Position numbers and translations under genes: made by a program. Source: Trichoplax adhaerens (Eukaryota; Animalia; Placozoa). From it: a stretch of 64,000 nucleotides of DNA. Shown here piece after piece: positions 9,001 through 24,815 of the stretch (its first letter is position 1; each line of letters begins with the position of its first letter). Location: assembly GCF_000150275.1 (NCBI RefSeq), contig NW_002060953.1:1461693-1525692 (forward strand). The letters run 5' to 3'. Under the pieces are notes generated by a model. That model saw only the letters and a program-made list of their open reading frames with translations, was not told the origin of the DNA and ran no database searches.

Positions 9001-10484
9001 GTATTCGGTACCGTTAGTTGTTGGAAATGTTACTCTCAGATTGAAGACAAGGCTGCTTGCGAAGATGCCGAAGGCAATATTTTGCACCAAGATTGCTACT
9101 TTGACATAAAATGTAAGTATTGAGATTTTTTGTATAGACTGTAATTACTAATAGCATGTATATTTGCAATTAGTAGCCTATAGTATGTAACAGTACGAAT
9201 TGAAATGAACGGTTTGTATATATATATTCCTTGATGAAGTAGATTTTTTATAACTCCCAATATTTATATTGCTATCGTAGTTCCCAAGTGCGATTGGTGC
9301 TTTTACAAAATAAGTCCTGCGGAAGATAAGGTTCGACTTATACTATTAATAACATTTTTAGCTTATCGAGAACAAATTTAAAACAGTTATTATTAATTGC
9401 ATTGAATTAAGGAAGAAGGAGTGAACTTAAACTTTGTTATTTGTAAAAAAGAAGACGAGTATTGCACTTTTCTCAAATGATTGTAAATTATCGCTAGGTA
9501 ACAAGTGCTCATCCGTGCATTTTATAAATATTTTTCAGCCTTCGTTATTTAGGCCCTCTGACTATACGATAATGTACAATGCGGAACTGTTAAATAAGAT
9601 AATAAAAAAAGCTATGATTACTTTTCATCAGGACCGGTAACCTTTTCGCGAATTGAGATCTACCAGCATAGTTTATCGTCAGACCTTTTGTAGTTACTGT
9701 AACTCGTATACAAGTGGGAACGCAACATTACTCTTTTCGTATTTTCAACCTACTATGAAGTAACTAGTTTTAATTACCCAGTGACTGACCCTAGTTACGG
9801 TAAAGGAATGACCACAACATAAAAATTATTATCCTTGAGTTACTGTACTGTATACATGTTAATAACAATCTGTCGGAGCTCATAGTAATGTTATGTATCA
9901 GCAATATTCCTTAGAATCTGTACTGCAATCATTTCAATTGGGATCTTACGTACACACTAATTGAAACATTTTTTTTCTTGATAAATTTTGAAGAAAATTT
10001 CGGGATTTTGGTGCAAATTCGAAGGTAAAAGATATCATCGAGAATGCTATGAGAAATATTCAGGTCCAAGGTCGGTTAGAAGTTAATTTATTACTTTCTA
10101 AATCCTTATCACCCTAACTAGTAATAATTGTGTCGACATGATTTATTTATTTAATTCCGCCTTCAATGGGCTGTATGCGTTATCATTATGATTATGGTTA
10201 TTGTCAGAGGCTATTTTCTTGCTGATGAAATGTATTGTAAAAATTAGGTGTACCGTTTGTTTCGATGTCATTATTACAAGACCTACTCAGGATTTCTGTG
10301 GCAAATTTATTCAAAACAATGATAAGGTATTGCCTGATTTGAAAACCTACCGTAAATTCTATATTGAAAACATTTGGATTGATATGTAAATTCTAATGCA
10401 TTATCAATATGTATTTTTAAGCTCTACCATTTGGAATGCTACAAGAAAAGAAAGCTAGCAGAATTGAAAGCACGCCGAAGTTAG
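6030..10484 (+). CDS. 13-exon gene: coiled-coil N-terminus plus three tandem CxxC-x(n)-HxxC zinc fingers (LIM-related)
   Basis: ATG at 6030 (MADKYQYDWRQ...). Exons start at ~6030, 7339, 7627, 8108, 8338, 8519, 8644, 8836, 9018, 9281, 9994, 10248 and 10422. All 12 GT-AG junctions are phase-consistent and give one open frame to TAG at 10482-10484. The C-terminus reads CWKC..HQDCY, CDWC..HRECY, CTVC..HLECY. Confidence 0.85.
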
Positions 10485-12230
10485 AAACGGAAGCTCGATT
10501 ATTATAAAGGGATTATCATACCTATAGCAACAATTTGCTGATGTACTATACGTTATCACGGAGGAATATTACTTTCTTGCCATCATTTAGATATTGTGCC
10601 CATGGTACAAACAAACAGTATTACTCGGGGCTGTAATAATATTGAATATGATTGATTATTTTCAATTTAGCATCAGTGATTGATCCTATTATAATTTATT
10701 ATTTCTAGTTGGCGCTACGCGTCGATATCATTGCTGTTGAGTCGAAAATATAAAACAGGGAACCTGTAAATTTTAATTCATTGAAAAACTTCTAGCCTCT
10801 CACTATTGTAAACTTGAGAATAAAGATTTATGCGTGTGCTAGTATGTATCCATAGTAGTGATTTTAGAGTGTAGTTACTGTAGCTAATTTCAATATGATA
10901 ACGTAGTATTGTTGAATACAGTTGTCATTTCTTCTATCGTGTAATATACTTGGACCAATGACCTTGCATTTTAATTCAATGATGAATCCACTTTTTATGA
11001 GTATATAAGACTCTTGCTGGTCGACAATAGTAATAACATTGTAAGGCTAGCGCCTATCATCATGCTCTGTATAACTTTCATTTGTAATTATCGATAGGAA
11101 ATAATATATGAGTAGTCAGACTACAGTTTTTTAACTTAATTTTAATGGAATAAAAAATTTAGAATAAGTTGAGCTGTTTGCGTTGGTTTCGGGAAGGCAT
11201 GCACAATTGAATTCTCCTGTCCTGGCAAAATTTTTTATATTAATGGTGGAAATTTGAACTTTATTAAAGCATACGAACCTACTTTAAGTGATCGTTCCCC
11301 TCTCGTAACTATACAATACTGAATTAATAATATTTAGCTGTAGTAATGTTGCATCTGCTTACGTGTCTTTAAGTCCAATTAATACACATAGGATCAAATA
11401 ACTATTAGCTATCGTGTTATAAGCGTTTGTCTGATAGTTCAAAGTGTGTAGCTCAATGCATCCATTACCCATTTCCTAATAATTGTTTTATGAATAAACG
11501 TGCTAATACGAAGGCGCTGGCTTGTGTCAACAGGTAATTTTATTACTACAGTATAACTCTACTGTACTGCTTGTCGTTGCTGATTGTGTTGGCAGCCATT
11601 AACTGTAAGTTTAAGCTTAACACATAACAGCTTTGCAAGATCCAAGATCTAATGATCATTAGCTTTGCTACTCACAAAGCTATATACTTTACAGTACTTC
11701 CAAAAGCAACTACTACAACAGTGTTTTCCTGTCAGCATACAGAAACTACAGCTAGCTTGATAAATAAATACCTAAAATGATTCTGTAGAGAAATCAACTA
11801 CTTCCCAAATTATATCAAGGTAGCGTGGAATAAATCGTATCCAGAGGATATGGTTTAATGGCCATTTTAACAGCGAACCATCACTAGAAACAGTTTAAAC
11901 TAGCTATCGATAAAGATGCCATCAGGTGGTTTTGATGGACTTGGCTAAATGGCTCACTTTGCATTAAATTATGCAAATTAAGAACTGTATAAAAACAAGT
12001 CTATAGTGTTATACTATACCGCTAGATATTATAGCATAGGGATAATACTGTTTAATAACAGGCTGTGATAACTTGTAATAACACTAAGTAATGTATTTAT
12101 ATATCATACTGGATTCAGATTTAGTTATAGCCAGCAGCAAAGTAATCTAGCATCGGCGGACTTGATCGCTTACAATTTTACTGTGTTTACTCATTTTAGA
12201 ACTACATTGATTTCATTTTGCTAGCCGAAA

Positions 12231-13283
12231 ATGATGAAAGCTGCACAAGTTGTAGAGGCAGGTGCCCCTCTCCAACTTCAAGAAGTCCCACTGCCTAAAG
12301 CCACTCATGATGAGGTTGTGATCAAAGTGATTTCTGTAGGCGTTTGCCATAGTGATCTGCACTTATGGGATGGTGGTTACGATCTTGGTGAAAAAGGATT
12401 CATGAAATTTGTAGAGAGAGGAGGCCATTATCCAGTAACCCCTGGCCATGAAATTGTTGGTAGTGTCCATCAGATGGGTGATGAAGTAGTTGATTTTGCT
12501 GTTGGGGATAATGTTCTTGTATTCCCTTGGATTGGTTGTGGTCAATGCCCGATTTGTCAAGCGGGCGATGACAATGTTTGCGATAAACCGAGATCGATTG
12601 GCATTTTTTGCAATGGTGGTTATGCTGAATATGTTATTATTCCAAGTTATAAATATCTTGCTAAGATTTCTGGTGTTGATTTCCATGCTGCCACATCGCT
12701 TGCTTGCTCAGGTTTAACTGCCTATAATGCAATCAAGAAAGCGAATGTAAGATCTCCAGAATATTTGGTCATCATAGGTACTGGTGGGCTGGGTCTGATG
12801 GGCATTCAATTGGCGAAAGCAACAACTCAAGCGAAAATCATTTGCGTTGATATCGATGATCAAAAATTAAATATAGCAAAGAATTTAGGCGCTGATTTTA
12901 TTGTTAACTCTAGCGATGGCAATGCAGTGCAGAAAATATACTCCATCTGTCCTAAAGGCGTCGATAGTGTTGTCGATTTTGTTAACGCCTCTCCGACGGC
13001 AAAGATAGGATTATCCATACTTAAGAAGCGTGGGAATTTAGTGCTTGTAGGATTATTTGGTGGTTCTATCGAAATCTCTTTAGTGACAATACCACTAAAG
13101 ACCTTAATTATTCAAGGCGCTTACACAGGTACTTATAGGGAAATGGTAGAGTTGCTACAATTGGCCAAAGAGGGGATCATTAATCCAATTATTTCAAAGC
13201 AGTATTCTTTACAAGAGGCTAATACCGCATTAAATGACTTAAAACAGAGGAAGATTGTAGGGCGAGCAGTAATCATCCCATAA
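12231..13283 (+). CDS. Zn-dependent medium-chain (MDR) NAD-linked alcohol dehydrogenase, prokaryote-type, intronless
   Basis: The 350-aa ORF has the catalytic-Zn motifs VCHSD, GHE and LACSG, the structural-Zn motif CGQCPIC..DNVC, the Rossmann motif GTGGLG and an acidic residue (CVDID) consistent with NAD use. Confidence 0.95.
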   Translation: MMKAAQVVEAGAPLQLQEVPLPKATHDEVVIKVISVGVCHSDLHLWDGGYDLGEKGFMKFVERGGHYPVTPGHEIVGSVHQMGDEVVDFAVGDNVLVFPWIGCGQCPICQAGDDNVCDKPRSIGIFCNGGYAEYVIIPSYKYLAKISGVDFHAATSLACSGLTAYNAIKKANVRSPEYLVIIGTGGLGLMGIQLAKATTQAKIICVDIDDQKLNIAKNLGADFIVNSSDGNAVQKIYSICPKGVDSVVDFVNASPTAKIGLSILKKRGNLVLVGLFGGSIEISLVTIPLKTLIIQGAYTGTYREMVELLQLAKEGIINPIISKQYSLQEANTALNDLKQRKIVGRAVIIP

Positions 13284-13820
13284 CGCTGTAACAAGTGACT
13301 TTCTTTTACCAATTGGCTATTAATCGTTGATACTTTACTTCGTCTAAAACGTTTAGCAGAGGATGATTCTGGGCTGGATGATAATCATCTTGTACTGTCT
13401 GCATACGTAGAATTAATGATAGTGTTGCATAATGGAGTTGTCATATTATGCGGTATAAAGTCCATGTTCTCGTATTATCCTCCTCCTCCTTATATTAAGA
13501 ATATACGTAACTACTCTCTACTGGCGTTAGTAAGGTTGCCATTTAGATACTTCAATTTTCAGTGGATAATGATTTGGGTAGTTGGTAGATGACAAATTTT
13601 AAACCATTTCCTAAGCTTAACAAGCACAAGCTAGGTGATTCATAAATTCATGATCACTAAATTACGGTACTACAATGTTTGGCTAAGCTACTATTGCTTA
13701 TTGTTACCATGTCCTATCGAAGAAATTGAGCCATATTGAAAGCGTTCTTTTACTGACAGACAAGTTTATTATATTGTACATACATATACCCTTAAATCTT
13801 GCAATTGTAATAAATCAAAA

Positions 13821-14730
13821 ATGGCAAATACCAGCATGATTATGGCATGGCAGGGATCGCAGCAACAGCGAGATTATCCAATAATTATAATCTGTTCATT
13901 ATTTTTATATGTATTAATAGCTATCTTTGTCATTCTTAATTTGATTCTCTATCAATTATTGCATGCAAGAAATTTTATATGATTTCTATTTCCTAATTTG
14001 CTACCACTAGATGATAGCAAAGCCACAACGCTATTTGTACATCCTTTTTCAATCCTAACAGTACTATGGATTCCATTTGAAGAACGAATTAATGCATACG
14101 TTGGTCTATTGCAGGATAAATTTTTATGTTGAACATATAATCTTGATATTTCTAAATTACTTGTATCTGCTACAATAAATAATAATCGAACTCTGATATT
14201 ATTAAGTTAGTTTCTGTGTGATATATATAATTTACGAGATATTTCATGCCATGGACACGTACGTGTAGAATCGAGTACAGACTTATAGGCAGGATAAAAA
14301 TAAATGAGTGGCAGTTACGGTAGAAGATGGAAGATTCCTTTATCCTACTCGTATAGTTGAATATTTCCGGTGAACAGTAAATGGATAAGAACTTACCTTT
14401 CTATAGCTAGAATTAGCTGTAATTAGTTGTAAAATAATACGGTTATACTGTTGATACAACGACAATGCTGCTAAACATCACCAGCGTTTTATTAATTTCT
14501 GATAGTCTTTCATATTGGTGTAACAGATCTGGCAAAATCATGTCTAATTTGTTGCAGCCAATTAGTTACAGGTAAGCACTGGTAAGATGTAACTATACAC
14601 AATTTTTAAAATTGCTGAAGGGTACATGATAACTTATGTTAACACGCTACACGTATGATCAAATCCAATCATGACATTAATGTGTTGTAATTGAAATGTG
14701 CATACATAAACATTTACAGACCATAGCAAT
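13821..14730 (+). pseudogene. Decayed rhodopsin-like GPCR pseudogene
   Basis: From ATG 13821: MANTS (N-glycosylation site), a TM1-like IIICSLFLYVLIAIFVILNLIL, an in-frame TGA, TM2-like FLFPNL..D..LFVHPFSILTVL and DKFLC (start of TM3). Further on, TM6-like TTMLLNITSVLLIS (~14460) and TM7-like SNPIMTL (~14660). Many stops and frameshifts. Confidence 0.55.
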
Positions 14731-15155
14731 AGGAGGCAATCGTTAATTCACACTTTTTAATACCCAGAAATTGAAAATTTTGTAACATACAGTACAAAGG
14801 TTTCTGAGTGAATTCCCCTTATCAAAGGAGATTAAGTATTCGACATATTATGTATAGGTTTATTTATTTAGATATAATTTTTGTGATGATAAATTGAACT
14901 GTAATGTTAGATTGAATTAGAGTTGAGAATTGTGAAACAATCTCAGCAATACTATATTATGTAATTAATAATATCAAAACTCGAATACAATAAGGTATAG
15001 GTTATGTTAATTATTATCGCGATGACAGTATCCTACATTGATATTACGTTACAGTACGAGAATTTTATCACATACAGTACATCCATTTGAATTTGTGTGC
15101 ATCCTAAATAATACAAGTGCTTTCAGTGGTCAAGATATTACAGTAAATATTTCTT

Positions 15156-18100
15156 TCATTGAGGCAAGCTATCTTTCATGACTAATTCTACGTTCCATAT
15201 CTGAAAAATAAAAAAAGAAAGGAAGATTAAAAGACTTTCTAAGTGGTTACTGCTTGTTACCGATTTCCCATACTTTAATTGATCTATCGTTACTGCAGGT
15301 AACAAGCAAATGCTTGCCATGATGGTAATTCATGGAAGAAATGCCACATTTCGTGTCAAAAAATGTGGCTAACGTTTGCCGACTGAATTAAATAGACAAA
15401 AGCATTTCAAGTATTAAGAATACAGTTTACTAAAAATTATTGTGAGATATACAATAAAAGTATTATAAATATTCTAGCTTACTCTGCGTCAGTTATGGTT
15501 TCATAACAATCGTTGCATACACGAACTGGAAATTCAAACCCTAGGGATGGCATTACAGACGTGTTTTCACTGCATTTGGCGCAGACTGCTATACCACATT
15601 TGCGACAATGATGCTGCAAATATCATTAAAACTAGCAGTTAAATTTAAAGATTTACAACAAGCCACTTCTGAGGCTTTATGTATTGCCATATTAATAGCA
15701 ACCGTTCAATCTGTAGGATCGCGCTAGAATGCAGATATTGACAAATGTTCAAGATACCTGTCGAAATCCAATCTTTTTTTCACTCCACATTTGCTTGACA
15801 TTCCAAAAAAATGGAACATCGCAACGCTGACATGAATCAGATTCAAGCCACTCTTTCGTCTTTAAGTAAGAATAAATGAAAACAAAACTGAATTGGTTGT
15901 GAATGAGTGGATCGGCAATCTTGAAATAGCGATATTATAATTTAAATTGATGGGCAGTACTATTGCTTTACATACCTCAACTCTGTCTACATCCATTTTC
16001 CATGTAACTATGAAGCCATCATCGGCAACTGAAATTAGCTTGCTTGCCTCGCGAACATAGTGGAGTGCCCGTATTTTATCGCTTTGGGTAATAGCAAGTG
16101 ATCCATTGTGAGAGTAAGTCCAGATGAGGAGGAGGCCATCAGTACAACATGTAATGAGAACGGTAATTTATGTAAGTCAATAAAGTGCTCTTTAAAACAC
16201 CCAATGATGGCAGCTTTTTCTACGTTATGCTACAAACCCGTGTCCATGCAATTGGTAAACGGTGCCTTTTCTACCTCCGATATCCCAGACCAGAATAGTT
16301 CTGTCAAAGCTTCCTGAAAATAATAACTGTTTATCGGGATCCCAAGCTAAACAGCGAATACTGCCTATAACCGAATAGGAAAAATACGTCGTATAATTCA
16401 GCTGCAATGCTGGCCATTTCATATTTCAAATCATATCATCAAGTATAATTTGCAATCCAGAAGTAAATGATAAGACTTTATTATTATTATCTTGTCTCAG
16501 ATACCTGAATGGCCTTGTAACGTTGTGACGGGCACCAAACTAGAATTATTGTCTTTAACTCGTAACACAGCGATGCTGCCGCCATAATCACCAACAAAGA
16601 TATGCTTACTATCTTGATCAAATCTGTAATTTCAGTTAAGGCAAAATAGACTGCGGCATGATCTCCATGTTACGCTTATTTTTAAAACTACGTAAACGTA
16701 AAACATTATGGGATATCAGTTCAAGTTCTACCCATATACAGCCTATTGCAATAAATATCAACATTCTTGAACTCTATTTCTACGCCGAAAATTAAGTATC
16801 GAGAGATTACTTGGTGGAAATTCTATCACGGGCGCTATACATAAACTTCAACTAAAATGTCTAATTCTAAGTTAGCTATCTGTGGTAGATCTTGAGAACG
16901 TCAACTTTAAAAAATAACTGCTATACAATTTATTATTGGATGGATACTCAAGAGCAATGCACCAAGCATTAGCCTGATAACCGCCTAAACGTCGACCAGT
17001 TTCACAGCAATGCCACTGCATATATTTGTCTCGACTGACACTTAACAACCAATTTAAATTCGGACTGTAAATTATTCCATTAACACGTCCTGAGTGGGCT
17101 AAAGAGAATAAACGAAATATTCTTTATATTGTAATAGAGAGAGAGAGAGAGAGATGTCACAGCACTGTCCTAATTACACTTGTCTATTCGATATCTCTAT
17201 GTATGTTCAATTACAGTGGGCTAACCATCATAAATAAAATCAATTGACTTCATCGAGTATATGGCAATGTTATTCGCAACTTCTACAATTTACTCAATAA
17301 TATTAAGGACCGTGATATACATGGGGTAATTACTCTTTGCTCGTTAGCATATGGGATTGCAAGAAAGCAATGAAGAAATTCATCTTACCGGCATAATCAC
17401 GCTTGTGAGTTATTTTGTTGAAATCTTCGGATAATTCAAATTCCTGTATGAATAGTGCAAATAAAAGGCGTCATTAACTGCACAATTACAAGCTATTAAC
17501 TAGTACAACATTAGGATTAAAATTTACTGCGGAATGTCTCATTTTCCTTTAGCTAAAGTAAACGAGCGATTGATGGGATAAATCAGACCGTCAAACAATA
17601 GCATAAAGCGGTTGCAACGGACATTTATTCCTCTATCCATTTCAGCAAGAAAGATACACATTTATGCTTTTGTTCATGATGGATGAACGTTTTCCACTAT
17701 GCTGAGCAAATAGACTGTCATTCTAATTAATGTAGGTCTTGTTCAATTCGATCTGACTTTCTAATTAGTAAATTTTGCTGTTAATAATGCTCTAATGAAA
17801 AGTGGGCATGAGTTACTTCAATAGTAACTACAGACATCAAATGATGCATAAAATTGTATTCTTGTTCGTTTGCATAGCTCTATTTGTATGAGGGAATAAT
17901 CCATTCAAGTGACGATAGCATCATTAGCGAGCAATGAATTACAACATCGGCACTGAATGTTTTTGACATGATGTTTACTTTTCAGTCAGCGTAAGTTTAC
18001 AGCACTACAAAATGAAACTATTCATTCTTGTCAACTAAAAATCAACGGATCCATTTTTGTCATGATACGCTCACAAAATGTAGTTAGGGTTTTATGCATA

Positions 18101-22240: not shown

Positions 22241-24006
22241 CTATTTTTGATTAATCTGAAATTCCGAAACAGACTTTAACATTTCCTCACTTACAATAGG
22301 CTGAAATAACTTATCTCTTTTATTAAAAACATAACAAGTTGCATCTTTAATATCAAACCACAACGAGTATAGCTTTACGGTTCCGGCTGCAATTTTCTCC
22401 TTCATAAAGCTATAAGAATTGACGTGTAAAAGTTGCTGCAACGTATTAATCTGTTGGCAGTATTACAAGTAAATGATTCAATATCGAGAAAAAATCCACG
22501 ATGCGACAAGCTCAAAGTATTGTGGATGAATGCAGCAGTCTATAAGTTATCGTAATTTTTAGTGCTTGATGTTCATTTTGCAGTAAATACGAGCAGAATG
22601 ATCATAATATCCATTTCGAGTGTACCTGAGATAACTGGTCCTTTGGCAATAGGTTTTGGTTAATATTAGCTTCGAATTTTAAACCGTTTTCATTAAATTC
22701 TAAATGCAATGGTTGGTCGCTATTCGATCGATCAACGAGTGTCGTCTTTTCCCATTTAGTGTAAGTCTGACTAGCAAATCGATAGATCCAGTCTAACACA
22801 AACGATGATTCACTAGGCGCAGTTCCGCCTAAAGAGTGCAATCCGTCCATCGCCTGCAATTACGAATTTATTAATTAGTTCTAAACGCTGATCATTTATA
22901 TTGATCTTTCACAGGATAAGAGTGTAGCCAAGGCTCTCCAAGCTTCTAAAATCAACAGTCAATGTTTAATCATCCTATCATTTCGGTTACTGATAGTCAA
23001 TTCTAATATTATCGTCCTACAGCGCTTGCAAAGGATTGTTCTATTGCGTAGACGTTAACAGTAACAACATGATATTACCACAATCGATGTCATCGCTTAG
23101 CCAGATATGATTGGCGAAGTGAGTATCCCACTAGAAATGCATGAGGATACTAACCTTACAATCGGAGTGTCCACACACCACAACAGAGCTGACTTGATTG
23201 CGAACACAAGCTAGTTCTAAAGCAGCAGCCTCTGCTGGTGTCCAACGTTCGTATATAAGTTTAGAATGGGGAACAATATTGCCTGCATTTCTAACAATGA
23301 AACTTTCACCAGGCGCAATGGAAGCAATGTTGGATGGAAATACCCGACTGTCCATGCAGGTAATGAAAATGCAGCTTGGCTATAAAGGCAGAGAAGATTG
23401 ATAACCAATTAAAAAGTATCCGGTCTAAGTATCGATTGAAATGACAGTATAGGCATTACTGAAGTTGTAAGTAATTAGCATGGACTGTCTTCTAGTGGTC
23501 CAATGGTCAATAGTCATGATTATAGTACATTCTAATAGCCCAGTTATCCACATGTTGTGCACTGTTCTGTACAGTATATTCCATCTTTTAATTGAAGTAA
23601 GATACTGATGGGCACAAAATACCAAGTTTTGCAGAACTTTGGCTTGTAGCTCAACATGTCTACGGAATAGCATGGCACTAACACTGTTACTTTACTGTAT
23701 TGTTATCCCATTGAATTATCTGTTATAATTGAACTAAGTTCTGTGAGGTAGGTATGCTAATCCTGTTGATTGCATCAACTGGTGATCCTTGTACGCTGGC
23801 TAGAACAACTGCTCGATATGATCATTTCAACCACTGTACAAGTCGATTTGTCCACGTCAACGGAATCACTTGCCGTTGCAATTTATCCAGCAAAAGGGTA
23901 TGCAACTTACCTGCACTTTTTCAGCTACCTGAGCATACAGAGTCTTATTGGCAGAACTTAAAGAGGCTGAATACCGTAAAACCCCACGAATGACTTTCTC
24001 AATCAT
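22241..24006 (-). CDS. Beta-class carbonic anhydrase (4 coding exons)
   Basis: Exon MIEKVIRGVLRY..KVQ (ATG 24006), exon PSCIFITCMDSR..RNAGN..AALELAC..VCGHSDCK, exon AMDGL..LSQ, exon INTLQQLLHV..WFDI. The beta-CA Zn ligand motifs CxDxR and HxxC are present. An acceptor at ~24049 indicates a further upstream exon. Confidence 0.92.
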
Positions 24007-24139: not shown

Positions 24140-24815
24140 AATGGTACCAGTACAGTGTACAGTACTGTACGTACAGTATTGTACTGTATGATGGTAACGA
24201 TGGCAAAGTAGTGTACACTGTACAGTACAGTACGGTACAATGTACAGTACTGTACAGTACATCAAATACGATCTGCTCTACCGTACACGGTACAGTACAG
24301 TACTTCAGTGTCTTGTACTGTACACTGTACAGTACAGTACAGTACAGTACTGTAAACTGTAAGATACAGTACATGTACTGTACAGTATACTGTACAGTAC
24401 ACACGACGGTGGGCGTCAAAATACAGTACAGTACAGTACAGAACAGTAAAGTAGACTCAGTACATACTGTACAGTAGTTTACTGTACATACTGTACTGTA
24501 CTGTACTGTACAGTATGATGGTAACGATGTTAAGGTACTGTACAAACAGTACAGTACAGTACTGTACACTGTACAGTACAGTACATCAAATACGATCTGC
24601 TCTACCGTACACTGTACTGTACAGCACAGTACTATAAACTGTAAGATACAGTACATGTACTGTATACACACGACGGTGGGCGTCAAAATACGGTACAAAA
24701 CAGTACAGTAGACTCAGTACATACAGTAGTGTATGAAGGTAACGATGGTAAGGTACAAACAGTACTGTATACTGTACAGTACAAACGACGGTGGGCATCA
24801 AAATACTGTACGGTA
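24140..24815. repeat. TACAG/CTGTA satellite with higher-order repeat structure
   Basis: Dense TACAG and CTGTA pentamers interleaved with recurring unique blocks (tatga.ggtaacgatg at ~24187, 24513, 24732; cgacggtgggc.tcaaaata at ~24404, 24670, 24786; catcaaatacgatctgctctaccgtacac twice). Confidence 0.92.

Follow-up and report, generated by a model that had tools for sequence, protein, structure and literature searches.

A probable archaeal alcohol dehydrogenase gene integrated, transcribed and duplicated in the genome of the placozoan Trichoplax adhaerens

We describe a gene for a zinc-dependent alcohol dehydrogenase (ADH) of the medium-chain dehydrogenase/reductase (MDR) type in a stretch of 64,000 nucleotides (nt) of the Trichoplax adhaerens genome (the window: NCBI RefSeq assembly GCF_000150275.1, contig NW_002060953.1, positions 1,461,693 to 1,525,692 of the forward strand, or G000:C1404:1461693-1525692 in our numbering of this assembly of 105.6 Mb and 1414 contigs); coordinates given without a contig are positions in the window. 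The gene is an open reading frame (ORF) at 12231..13283 on the plus strand that runs uninterrupted from ATG to stop through 350 codons, and no second long ORF was found near it. We favour, with a probability of about 0.9, the reading that the gene is an archaeal ADH which was acquired by an ancestor of the Trichoplax-type placozoans and then integrated, expressed and duplicated in its new host. Under this reading the ancestor of today's Trichoplax-type placozoans would have taken up the gene from an ammonia oxidiser of the Nitrosopumilaceae lineage, whose branch would come off at the base of the sampled Nitrosopumilaceae crown or close to it; of the archaeal DNA the ORF alone would have stayed recognisable, now lying in AT-rich placozoan DNA and transcribed alone as an unspliced mRNA; and later a segment of at least 3.1 kb, with the gene and its host flanks, would have been copied to another chromosome region, where the copy would have lost about 1.2 kb, chiefly of the ORF, and decayed to a weakly transcribed pseudogene. 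The original prediction, made from the DNA letters, had proposed horizontal gene transfer (HGT) from archaea to animals and had set three findings against its own proposal, namely a protein that groups with animals, best matches in bacteria, and a gene not linked to its neighbours; the proposal is supported and none of the three was found.

The closest relatives of the protein are those of ammonia-oxidising archaea (AOA). In a search of 5.8 billion proteins the best 119 matches besides the Trichoplax gene model were 350-residue proteins with 65-69% identity over the full length, and the organism names among them were all Nitrosopumilus or Nitrosarchaeum, bar one contig of 4159 nt from a metagenome-assembled genome (MAG) labelled Desulfobacterales. 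Proteins of this length and identity number in the hundreds. The likeness to Nitrosopumilus-type enzymes that the original prediction had pointed out is real at this level of identity, and the protein searches gave archaeal rather than bacterial best matches, the sole bacterial label lying inside the Nitrosopumilaceae clade. We note that the ADH of this 'Desulfobacterales bacterium' MAG (P0043) is almost identical to the Nitrosopumilaceae proteins and nested among them, and that it is probably a mis-binned archaeal contig. Blastp scores were 477-506 bits for AOA, 275 for the amoeba Balamuthia and 223 for the best animal, a gap of 283 bits between the best archaeon and the best animal (506 - 223). 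A genome scan with one genome per prokaryotic species gave 11 confirmed loci, nine of them from Nitrosopumilus or Nitrososphaerota and several of these from single-cell genomes. Within the Nitrososphaeria a match at E <= 1e-40 is present in 349 of the 401 genomes sampled, and the matches fall into a tier of 60-68% identity, mostly in genomes of 1.1-2.2 Mb, and a tier of 46-54% identity, often in genomes of 2.5-3.9 Mb, beyond which there are distant MDRs.

The maximum-likelihood phylogeny that the original prediction called for (IQ-TREE, LG+C20+F+G4 mixture model, 76 rows) places the Trichoplax protein inside the AOA. It falls within an AOA clade of 30 rows (support 99/95), the next node adds a Nitrosopumilaceae paralogue (L009-type) to give 31 rows (100/98), and outside this comes a second AOA clade, from the 2.5-3.9 Mb genomes (support 92 in a quick tree). 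On the two strongly supported nodes it belongs to the Nitrosopumilaceae ADH orthologue group that we call AOA1, with a terminal branch of 0.30 as against roughly 0.05-0.15 in the archaeal ADHs. In approximately unbiased (AU) tests on a 33-row subset under LG+F+G4, placement of Trichoplax with the animal clade was rejected (difference in log-likelihood, ΔlnL, 44.9; p 0.029), as was its placement outside all AOA (ΔlnL 57.5; p 0.020).

The animal clade of these tests is a real one. Among the library representatives with 38-46% identity there is a wide animal clade of the sponges Corticium and Sycon, Branchiostoma, Asterias, Styela, Owenia and Dimorphilus, besides the amoebozoan Balamuthia, and in a FastTree phylogeny the animal/eukaryote group appeared as the unstarred sister (support 90) of the archaeal and Trichoplax sequences together, so that a vertically inherited animal gene, or a transfer in reverse, had to be considered. 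Under the mixture model with 76 rows the animal clade moves off and is no longer sister. The Trichoplax gene could in principle be a divergent vertical member of this animal 'alcohol dehydrogenase-like' family, which does exist within the same broad subgroup of MDR proteins, its likeness to the AOA proteins being convergent. This is exceedingly improbable, since the protein is 34-38% identical to the animal proteins against 65-69% to those of AOA, a whole-length identity of such a level is not explained by convergence, the animal sequences form a separate clade from which Trichoplax stands apart in the mixture-model tree and with which the AU test rejects its monophyly, and a gene without introns can share no intron positions with that family. 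As an observation in its own right, this patchy clade, named 'alcohol dehydrogenase-like/AdhA-like', comprises P0126, P0168, P0171, P0172, P0201, P0211, P0221 and P0237, from two sponges, amphioxus, a starfish, a tunicate and two annelids, and the amoebozoan Balamuthia is related to it on a separate branch.

The archaeal loci themselves bear on the direction of transfer. The closest archaeal ADHs adjoin genes for TFB, SRP19, ribosomal protein S8e, ScpA/ScpB and eIF-1A, and the order ScpB-ScpA-ADH is kept in 40 of the 41 loci of the 60-68% tier and absent from the lower tier; such synteny indicates that the gene is resident and vertically inherited in the Nitrosopumilaceae. The only AOA1 locus without scpB-scpA synteny (L022/L023/L031, on a 3.2 Mb contig of genome G253) adjoins IS1595 and DDE_3 transposase genes and haem-synthesis genes, and the archaeal group closest to Trichoplax contains G253 and a second genome, G039 (4.3 Mb), both larger than is usual in the family. 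Nesting in two successive AOA clades with rejection of a position outside them, the wide occurrence of the family in Nitrososphaeria, the conserved archaeal synteny and the lack of introns in the Trichoplax gene together firmly indicate archaeal ancestry and a transfer from archaeon to placozoan. The reverse course, in which a gene native to placozoans or early animals was taken up by an ancestor of the Nitrosopumilaceae, would agree with the FastTree topology and with the position of Trichoplax near the base of AOA1, where a sister relationship to the archaeal crown is not rejected. We consider it very unlikely, because two more lineages of AOA, that of the L009-type paralogue and that of the 2.5-3.9 Mb genomes, branch outside Trichoplax and AOA1, a position of Trichoplax outside all AOA is rejected, the mixture model does not make the animal clade the sister group, the gene lacks introns in a genome rich in them, and on the archaeal side the family is widespread, with the AOA1 copy in fixed synteny.

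Some features of the trees and of the sampling weigh against the reading of an archaeal gene nested in the Nitrosopumilaceae. The AU test does not reject a tree that makes Trichoplax the sister of the Nitrosopumilaceae crown (ΔlnL 12.9; p 0.12), and placements within and beside the crown are both compatible with it. The pairing of Trichoplax with the sequence P0092 reaches only 85% in the Shimodaira-Hasegawa-like approximate likelihood ratio test (SH-aLRT) of the quick tree, the AU rejections stand at the 2-3% level for 33 rows under LG+F+G4 rather than the mixture model, and many of the nearest sequences are metagenome proteins without an organism name.

The ADH gene is physically integrated in the placozoan genome between spliced host genes. 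Contigs of public runs from two placozoan organisms, A and B, were placed on window positions 10000-15999, and a single DNA contig of 9460 nt from organism B (run X4) spans 11060-15999 with 28 differences (99.4% identity), at a depth of 66.7 compared with 61-63 in neighbouring contigs of the same organism. Whereas a lack of linkage had been named as speaking against a transfer, the gene and its neighbours are thus joined at host depth. Upstream lie the 3' exons of a spliced host gene on the plus strand (10000..11110), with GT..AG introns at 10069-10245 and 10323-10417 and RNA to about 11069-11110. Downstream, on the minus strand, lie the 3' exons of a spliced WDFY-like host gene (14486-15200, 15274-15382, 15483-15613 and 15758-15859), whose introns, CT..AC when read on the plus strand, are skipped in RNA contigs (15200/15274, 15382/15483, 15613/15758). 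It encodes a FYVE domain at 15479-15619 and has a WD40 exon further along at 16225-16422; with FYVE and WD40 exons joined by such introns on the minus strand, the neighbour had been rightly recognised as WDFY2, in the sense of WDFY2-like.

Base composition says less about the origin of the gene. The AT-rich, host-like DNA that had been adduced against a contaminant is there, the surrounding DNA having 32-33% GC and the ORF 40.7%, but as an argument it is weak, since archaeal loci of the donor type are also AT-rich (locus GC 0.34) and composition is a weak witness where donor and host are alike. GC at third codon positions (GC3) is 0.32 in the ADH gene, nearer to the 0.37 of a small sample of host exons than to the average of 0.22 in the archaeal orthologues. 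That composition does not discriminate would leave room for contamination, in the form of an ORF from a co-cultured archaeon misassembled onto host DNA. We give this a negligible chance, as the ORF has at most 67-70% nucleotide identity to any archaeal gene, the same junctions recur at host depth in an independent assembly of another placozoan, and a decayed duplicate has the same host flanks. Archaeal AmoA/amoA was not found in the Trichoplax assembly by a search that was positive in both ADH-bearing archaeal genomes checked (n=2).

A tblastx comparison of window positions 10000-16000 with nine archaeal loci gave no remnants of donor neighbours outside the ORF, and the Trichoplax gene is without scpB-scpA or CxxCxxCC/eIF-1A neighbours, as expected for a single transferred gene. 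That no donor flanks are left is one of the points against the account, and any mechanism of entry or route of uptake is conjectural. The immediate source being unmarked, a gene of Nitrosopumilaceae origin might have arrived indirectly, through a bacterial symbiont, a virus or another eukaryote, in a genome that has other prokaryote-type candidate transfers, rickettsial ones included (PMC3641634). Among the nameable rows of the tree, however, no non-archaeal sequence stands between Trichoplax and the AOA clade, and P0043, the sole bacterial label, lies deep among AOA and resembles a binning error, and we regard an indirect route as unlikely.

The gene is transcribed in its placozoan host. In run X15 (organism A), whose other contigs are spliced, a contig of 2013 nt lies without gaps on 12140-14152, and in the true RNA-Seq run X19 (organism B) a contig of 1344 nt lies without gaps on 12416-13753, so that the RNA contigs over the ADH come from two studies and two placozoan organisms. 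RNA depth is zero over 11200-12000 in both runs and, in the run of organism A, in the 14200-14399 bin between the ADH and WDFY-like contigs. From the gapless contigs and the zero-depth gaps it follows that the ADH is transcribed unspliced and apart from its neighbours. Its transcribed leader on the plus strand is 12140..12230, the first position being the start of the X15 contig, which is a contig end and not a mapped transcription start, and the transcribed 3' region is 13284..14152, with RNA contigs to 13753 (X19) and 14152 (X15); AATAAA motifs stand at 13809-13814 and 14174-14179. All read evidence consists of Logan contigs, which carry no strand, transcript ends or expression level, and this too counts on the negative side. 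An intact, intronless MDR ADH of 350 residues, as it had been described at the outset, is borne out by the ORF, the Pfam domains and the gapless RNA contigs.

The RNA evidence also corrects the public gene model. The ORF protein equals T. adhaerens model TRIADDRAFT_29716 save for the first methionine, the model beginning at the second, and for a gap of 11 residues (54-64) where the model removes 33 nt (12390..12422, plus strand) as an intron. These 33 nt are kept in the RNA contig, so the intron is not used, and they are present in all archaeal homologues; the intron is thus a gene-model error, and its removal from the public model is a practical gain of this work.

The ADH segment has been duplicated within the host. 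A second, broken copy of the gene lies at G000:C1413:3720972-3721268, and with its host flanks the truncated and stop-bearing pseudogene occupies G000:C1413:3719713-3721815 on the minus strand (L013 about 242-2343). It corresponds to codons 1 to about 100, with two in-frame stops and a lysine in place of the glutamate after the catalytic histidine. In the window, the left part of the duplicated segment (11809..12523, plus strand) contains upstream non-coding DNA and codons 1 to about 98 and has 74-79% nucleotide identity to the pseudogene locus (about 3.7197-3.7218 Mb, minus strand), and the right part (13715..14970, plus strand) has 70% identity over 1284 nt and enters the 3' terminal exon of the WDFY-like gene; positions 12524-13714 of the window are missing from the second copy. 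Because host flanks are shared by both loci, a segment of at least 3.1 kb, gene and host flanks together, was duplicated inside the placozoan genome. The pseudogene has 57% amino acid identity to the intact copy as against 34-40% to archaea, recurs in organism B, and has a weak signal in the RNA runs. The two loci have diverged by about 30% in non-coding DNA, and organisms A and B differ by about 0.6% here. Two other origins of the second copy were ruled out: a retrocopy by homology that reaches about 420 nt upstream into untranscribed DNA and along about 1.25 kb of 3' flank, and carriage as transposon cargo by the occurrence of both flanks at only two places in the whole genome.

The intact gene is present in organisms A and B, whose ORFs differ at five synonymous sites, all third positions, and at no non-synonymous site. 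Such a pattern may reflect selection on the gene, and five differences are too few for a ratio of non-synonymous to synonymous rates (dN/dS). In organism C, a more distant placozoan in which exons of the WDFY-like gene are 83-87% identical in nucleotides, a contig of 331 nt matches 13047-13116 at 80%; both its loose ends, judged by eye, are free of stops in the ORF frame and have a motif in common with Trichoplax that is absent from the archaea there. This one contig suggests an ADH orthologue in organism C, thin support which, together with the small number of A/B differences, belongs among the points that tell against our account. A search with residues 250-350 gave archaeal fragments only and no partial orthologues in other placozoans. 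An apparent orthologue in a more distant placozoan would make the transfer an old one.

Nitrosopumilaceae are marine ammonia oxidisers and are also common symbionts of animals, and the archaeal group nearest Trichoplax includes unusually large, transposase-rich genomes. We tentatively put forward, as a possibility that we hold to be rather less probable than its negation, that the transfer took place before the sampled placozoan genera diverged, from host-associated Nitrosopumilaceae, and that the gene was retained for a redox role in digestion or detoxification. If this were true, the ADH would record at the molecular level a close and ancient association of AOA with early-branching animals, and would be among the oldest retained transfers from archaeon to animal.

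The protein encoded at 12231..13283 (plus strand; 350 amino acids plus stop) was assigned to the zinc MDR alcohol dehydrogenases from Pfam, its homologues and an alignment to PDB 2eer, residue numbers being our own count on the ORF translation and that alignment. It matches Pfam ADH_N (PF08240; 95.7 bits, cut-off 23.5, E 2e-27) and ADH_zinc_N (PF00107; 91.3 bits, cut-off 31.8, E 6e-26). The catalytic zinc ligands are intact (C39, H73/E74, C159), the structural zinc lobe is complete (C103, C106, C109, C117), and the dinucleotide fold G183-T-G-G-L-G188 (GxGxxG) is followed by V206-D207, at the same positions as in the NAD-dependent 2eer; domains, zinc ligands and a dinucleotide fold whose strand beta-2 is followed by an acidic residue, as in enzymes that prefer NAD, are what place it among the zinc MDRs. 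Its top NCBIfam model, the equivalog AdhP (NF006940), scores 214.9 bits, under the cut-off of 344, and the protein therefore belongs to no curated equivalog; the score for the Thermoproteota acryloyl-CoA reductase model NF041172 is 153.1 bits, under a cut-off of 500. The N-terminus aligns with the archaeal proteins from residue 2, which implies that no N-terminal targeting extension has been added. The insertion that had been taken as typical of a microbial MDR subgroup is real, as a loop at residues about 48-66, but it is less distinctive than was thought, as NAD-dependent ADHs of the Sulfolobus type have the loop too, shorter by five residues. The enzyme is most likely a cytosolic, NAD-dependent, oligomeric ADH of Sulfolobus type that would interconvert alcohols and aldehydes or ketones, its activity, cofactor and location being predicted from sequence; no function was found assigned to the thaumarchaeal orthologue in the literature on the thaumarchaeal 3-hydroxypropionate/4-hydroxybutyrate (HP/HB) cycle.

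Other MDR genes and window features were observed in passing. Four tandem MDR matches at G000:C1400:1159183-1170307 (L014, L015, L016 and L018) have open frames of 248-349 amino acids without internal stops and are 28-30% identical to the ADH; the best model for L014 (a 337-residue ORF) is the NADPH-dependent aldehyde reductase Ahr, at 321 bits (cut-off 470). Elsewhere in the window an exon at 23131-23355 on the minus strand encodes a beta-class carbonic anhydrase domain (Pfam Pro_CA, E 1.5e-17), and a degenerate GTACA-based minisatellite at 24220-24585, with about 70 copies and 65% matches, yields long spurious ORFs on both strands.

Gene transfers retained by animals are overwhelmingly bacterial or fungal, and few cases with an archaeal donor show everything that is usually asked of such a transfer: linkage, read depth like that of the host, expression, a place within the donor clade and occurrence in more than one species. 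In the present case the gene is linked to host genes at host depth, transcribed in the host, nested among the donor sequences and set apart from other animals by a wide gap in score, and the acquisition is well documented as a newly described transfer of a known type, HGT into an animal, with a donor that is unusual and identifiable. We found no literature that names TRIADDRAFT_29716 or that connects placozoans to a transfer of Nitrosopumilus type. The donor can be identified to family level (Nitrosopumilaceae), and the recipient is among the earliest-branching animal lineages. The event lies far enough back for a duplicate of the gene to have decayed since, and provides a datable marker of contact between placozoans and AOA; the gene further offers a test case of a prokaryotic gene gaining eukaryotic expression signals without introns, and a candidate enzyme for the biology of feeding and detoxification in placozoans.

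The closest known counterpart is the 350-residue zinc ADH of Nitrosopumilaceae, annotated as 'propanol-preferring alcohol dehydrogenase', with which the Trichoplax protein is colinear over residues 1-350 and shares its length, loop and zinc motifs. The two differ in setting, the Trichoplax gene lying in an animal context and the archaeal one between scpA and the gene for the CxxCxxCC protein or eIF-1A, and also in the longer terminal branch and higher GC3 of the former (0.30, and 0.32 vs a mean of 0.22). Among solved structures the Trichoplax protein comes nearest to the NAD-dependent ADHs of Sulfolobus tokodaii (2eer) and Saccharolobus solfataricus (1jvb), with 1r37 (E 4e-85 to 1e-83, full length), which have the catalytic Cys, His-Glu and Cys positions, the structural zinc lobe and the NAD-type Asp in common with it; the first structural-zinc ligand is Cys in Trichoplax and Glu in Sulfolobus, the Trichoplax loop is longer by five residues, and the Trichoplax protein is non-thermophilic in origin. 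With the animal 'ADH-like / AdhA-like' clade, its nearest animal relatives, it shares the MDR subgroup and a comparable length (358-387 amino acids in that clade), in contrast to an identity of only 34-38% and the well-supported separation of that clade. Transfers from bacteria to Trichoplax have been reported for dapF, murA, rsmE, photolyases, GNATs and others (Driscoll et al. 2013, PMC3641634), in a screen for bacterial genes that makes no mention of alcohol dehydrogenase or Nitrosopumilus. The ADH gene resembles those cases in being a prokaryote-type gene among eukaryotic genes on a large scaffold, recognised by the same criteria of scaffold context, introns and phylogeny, and differs from them in its archaeal donor.

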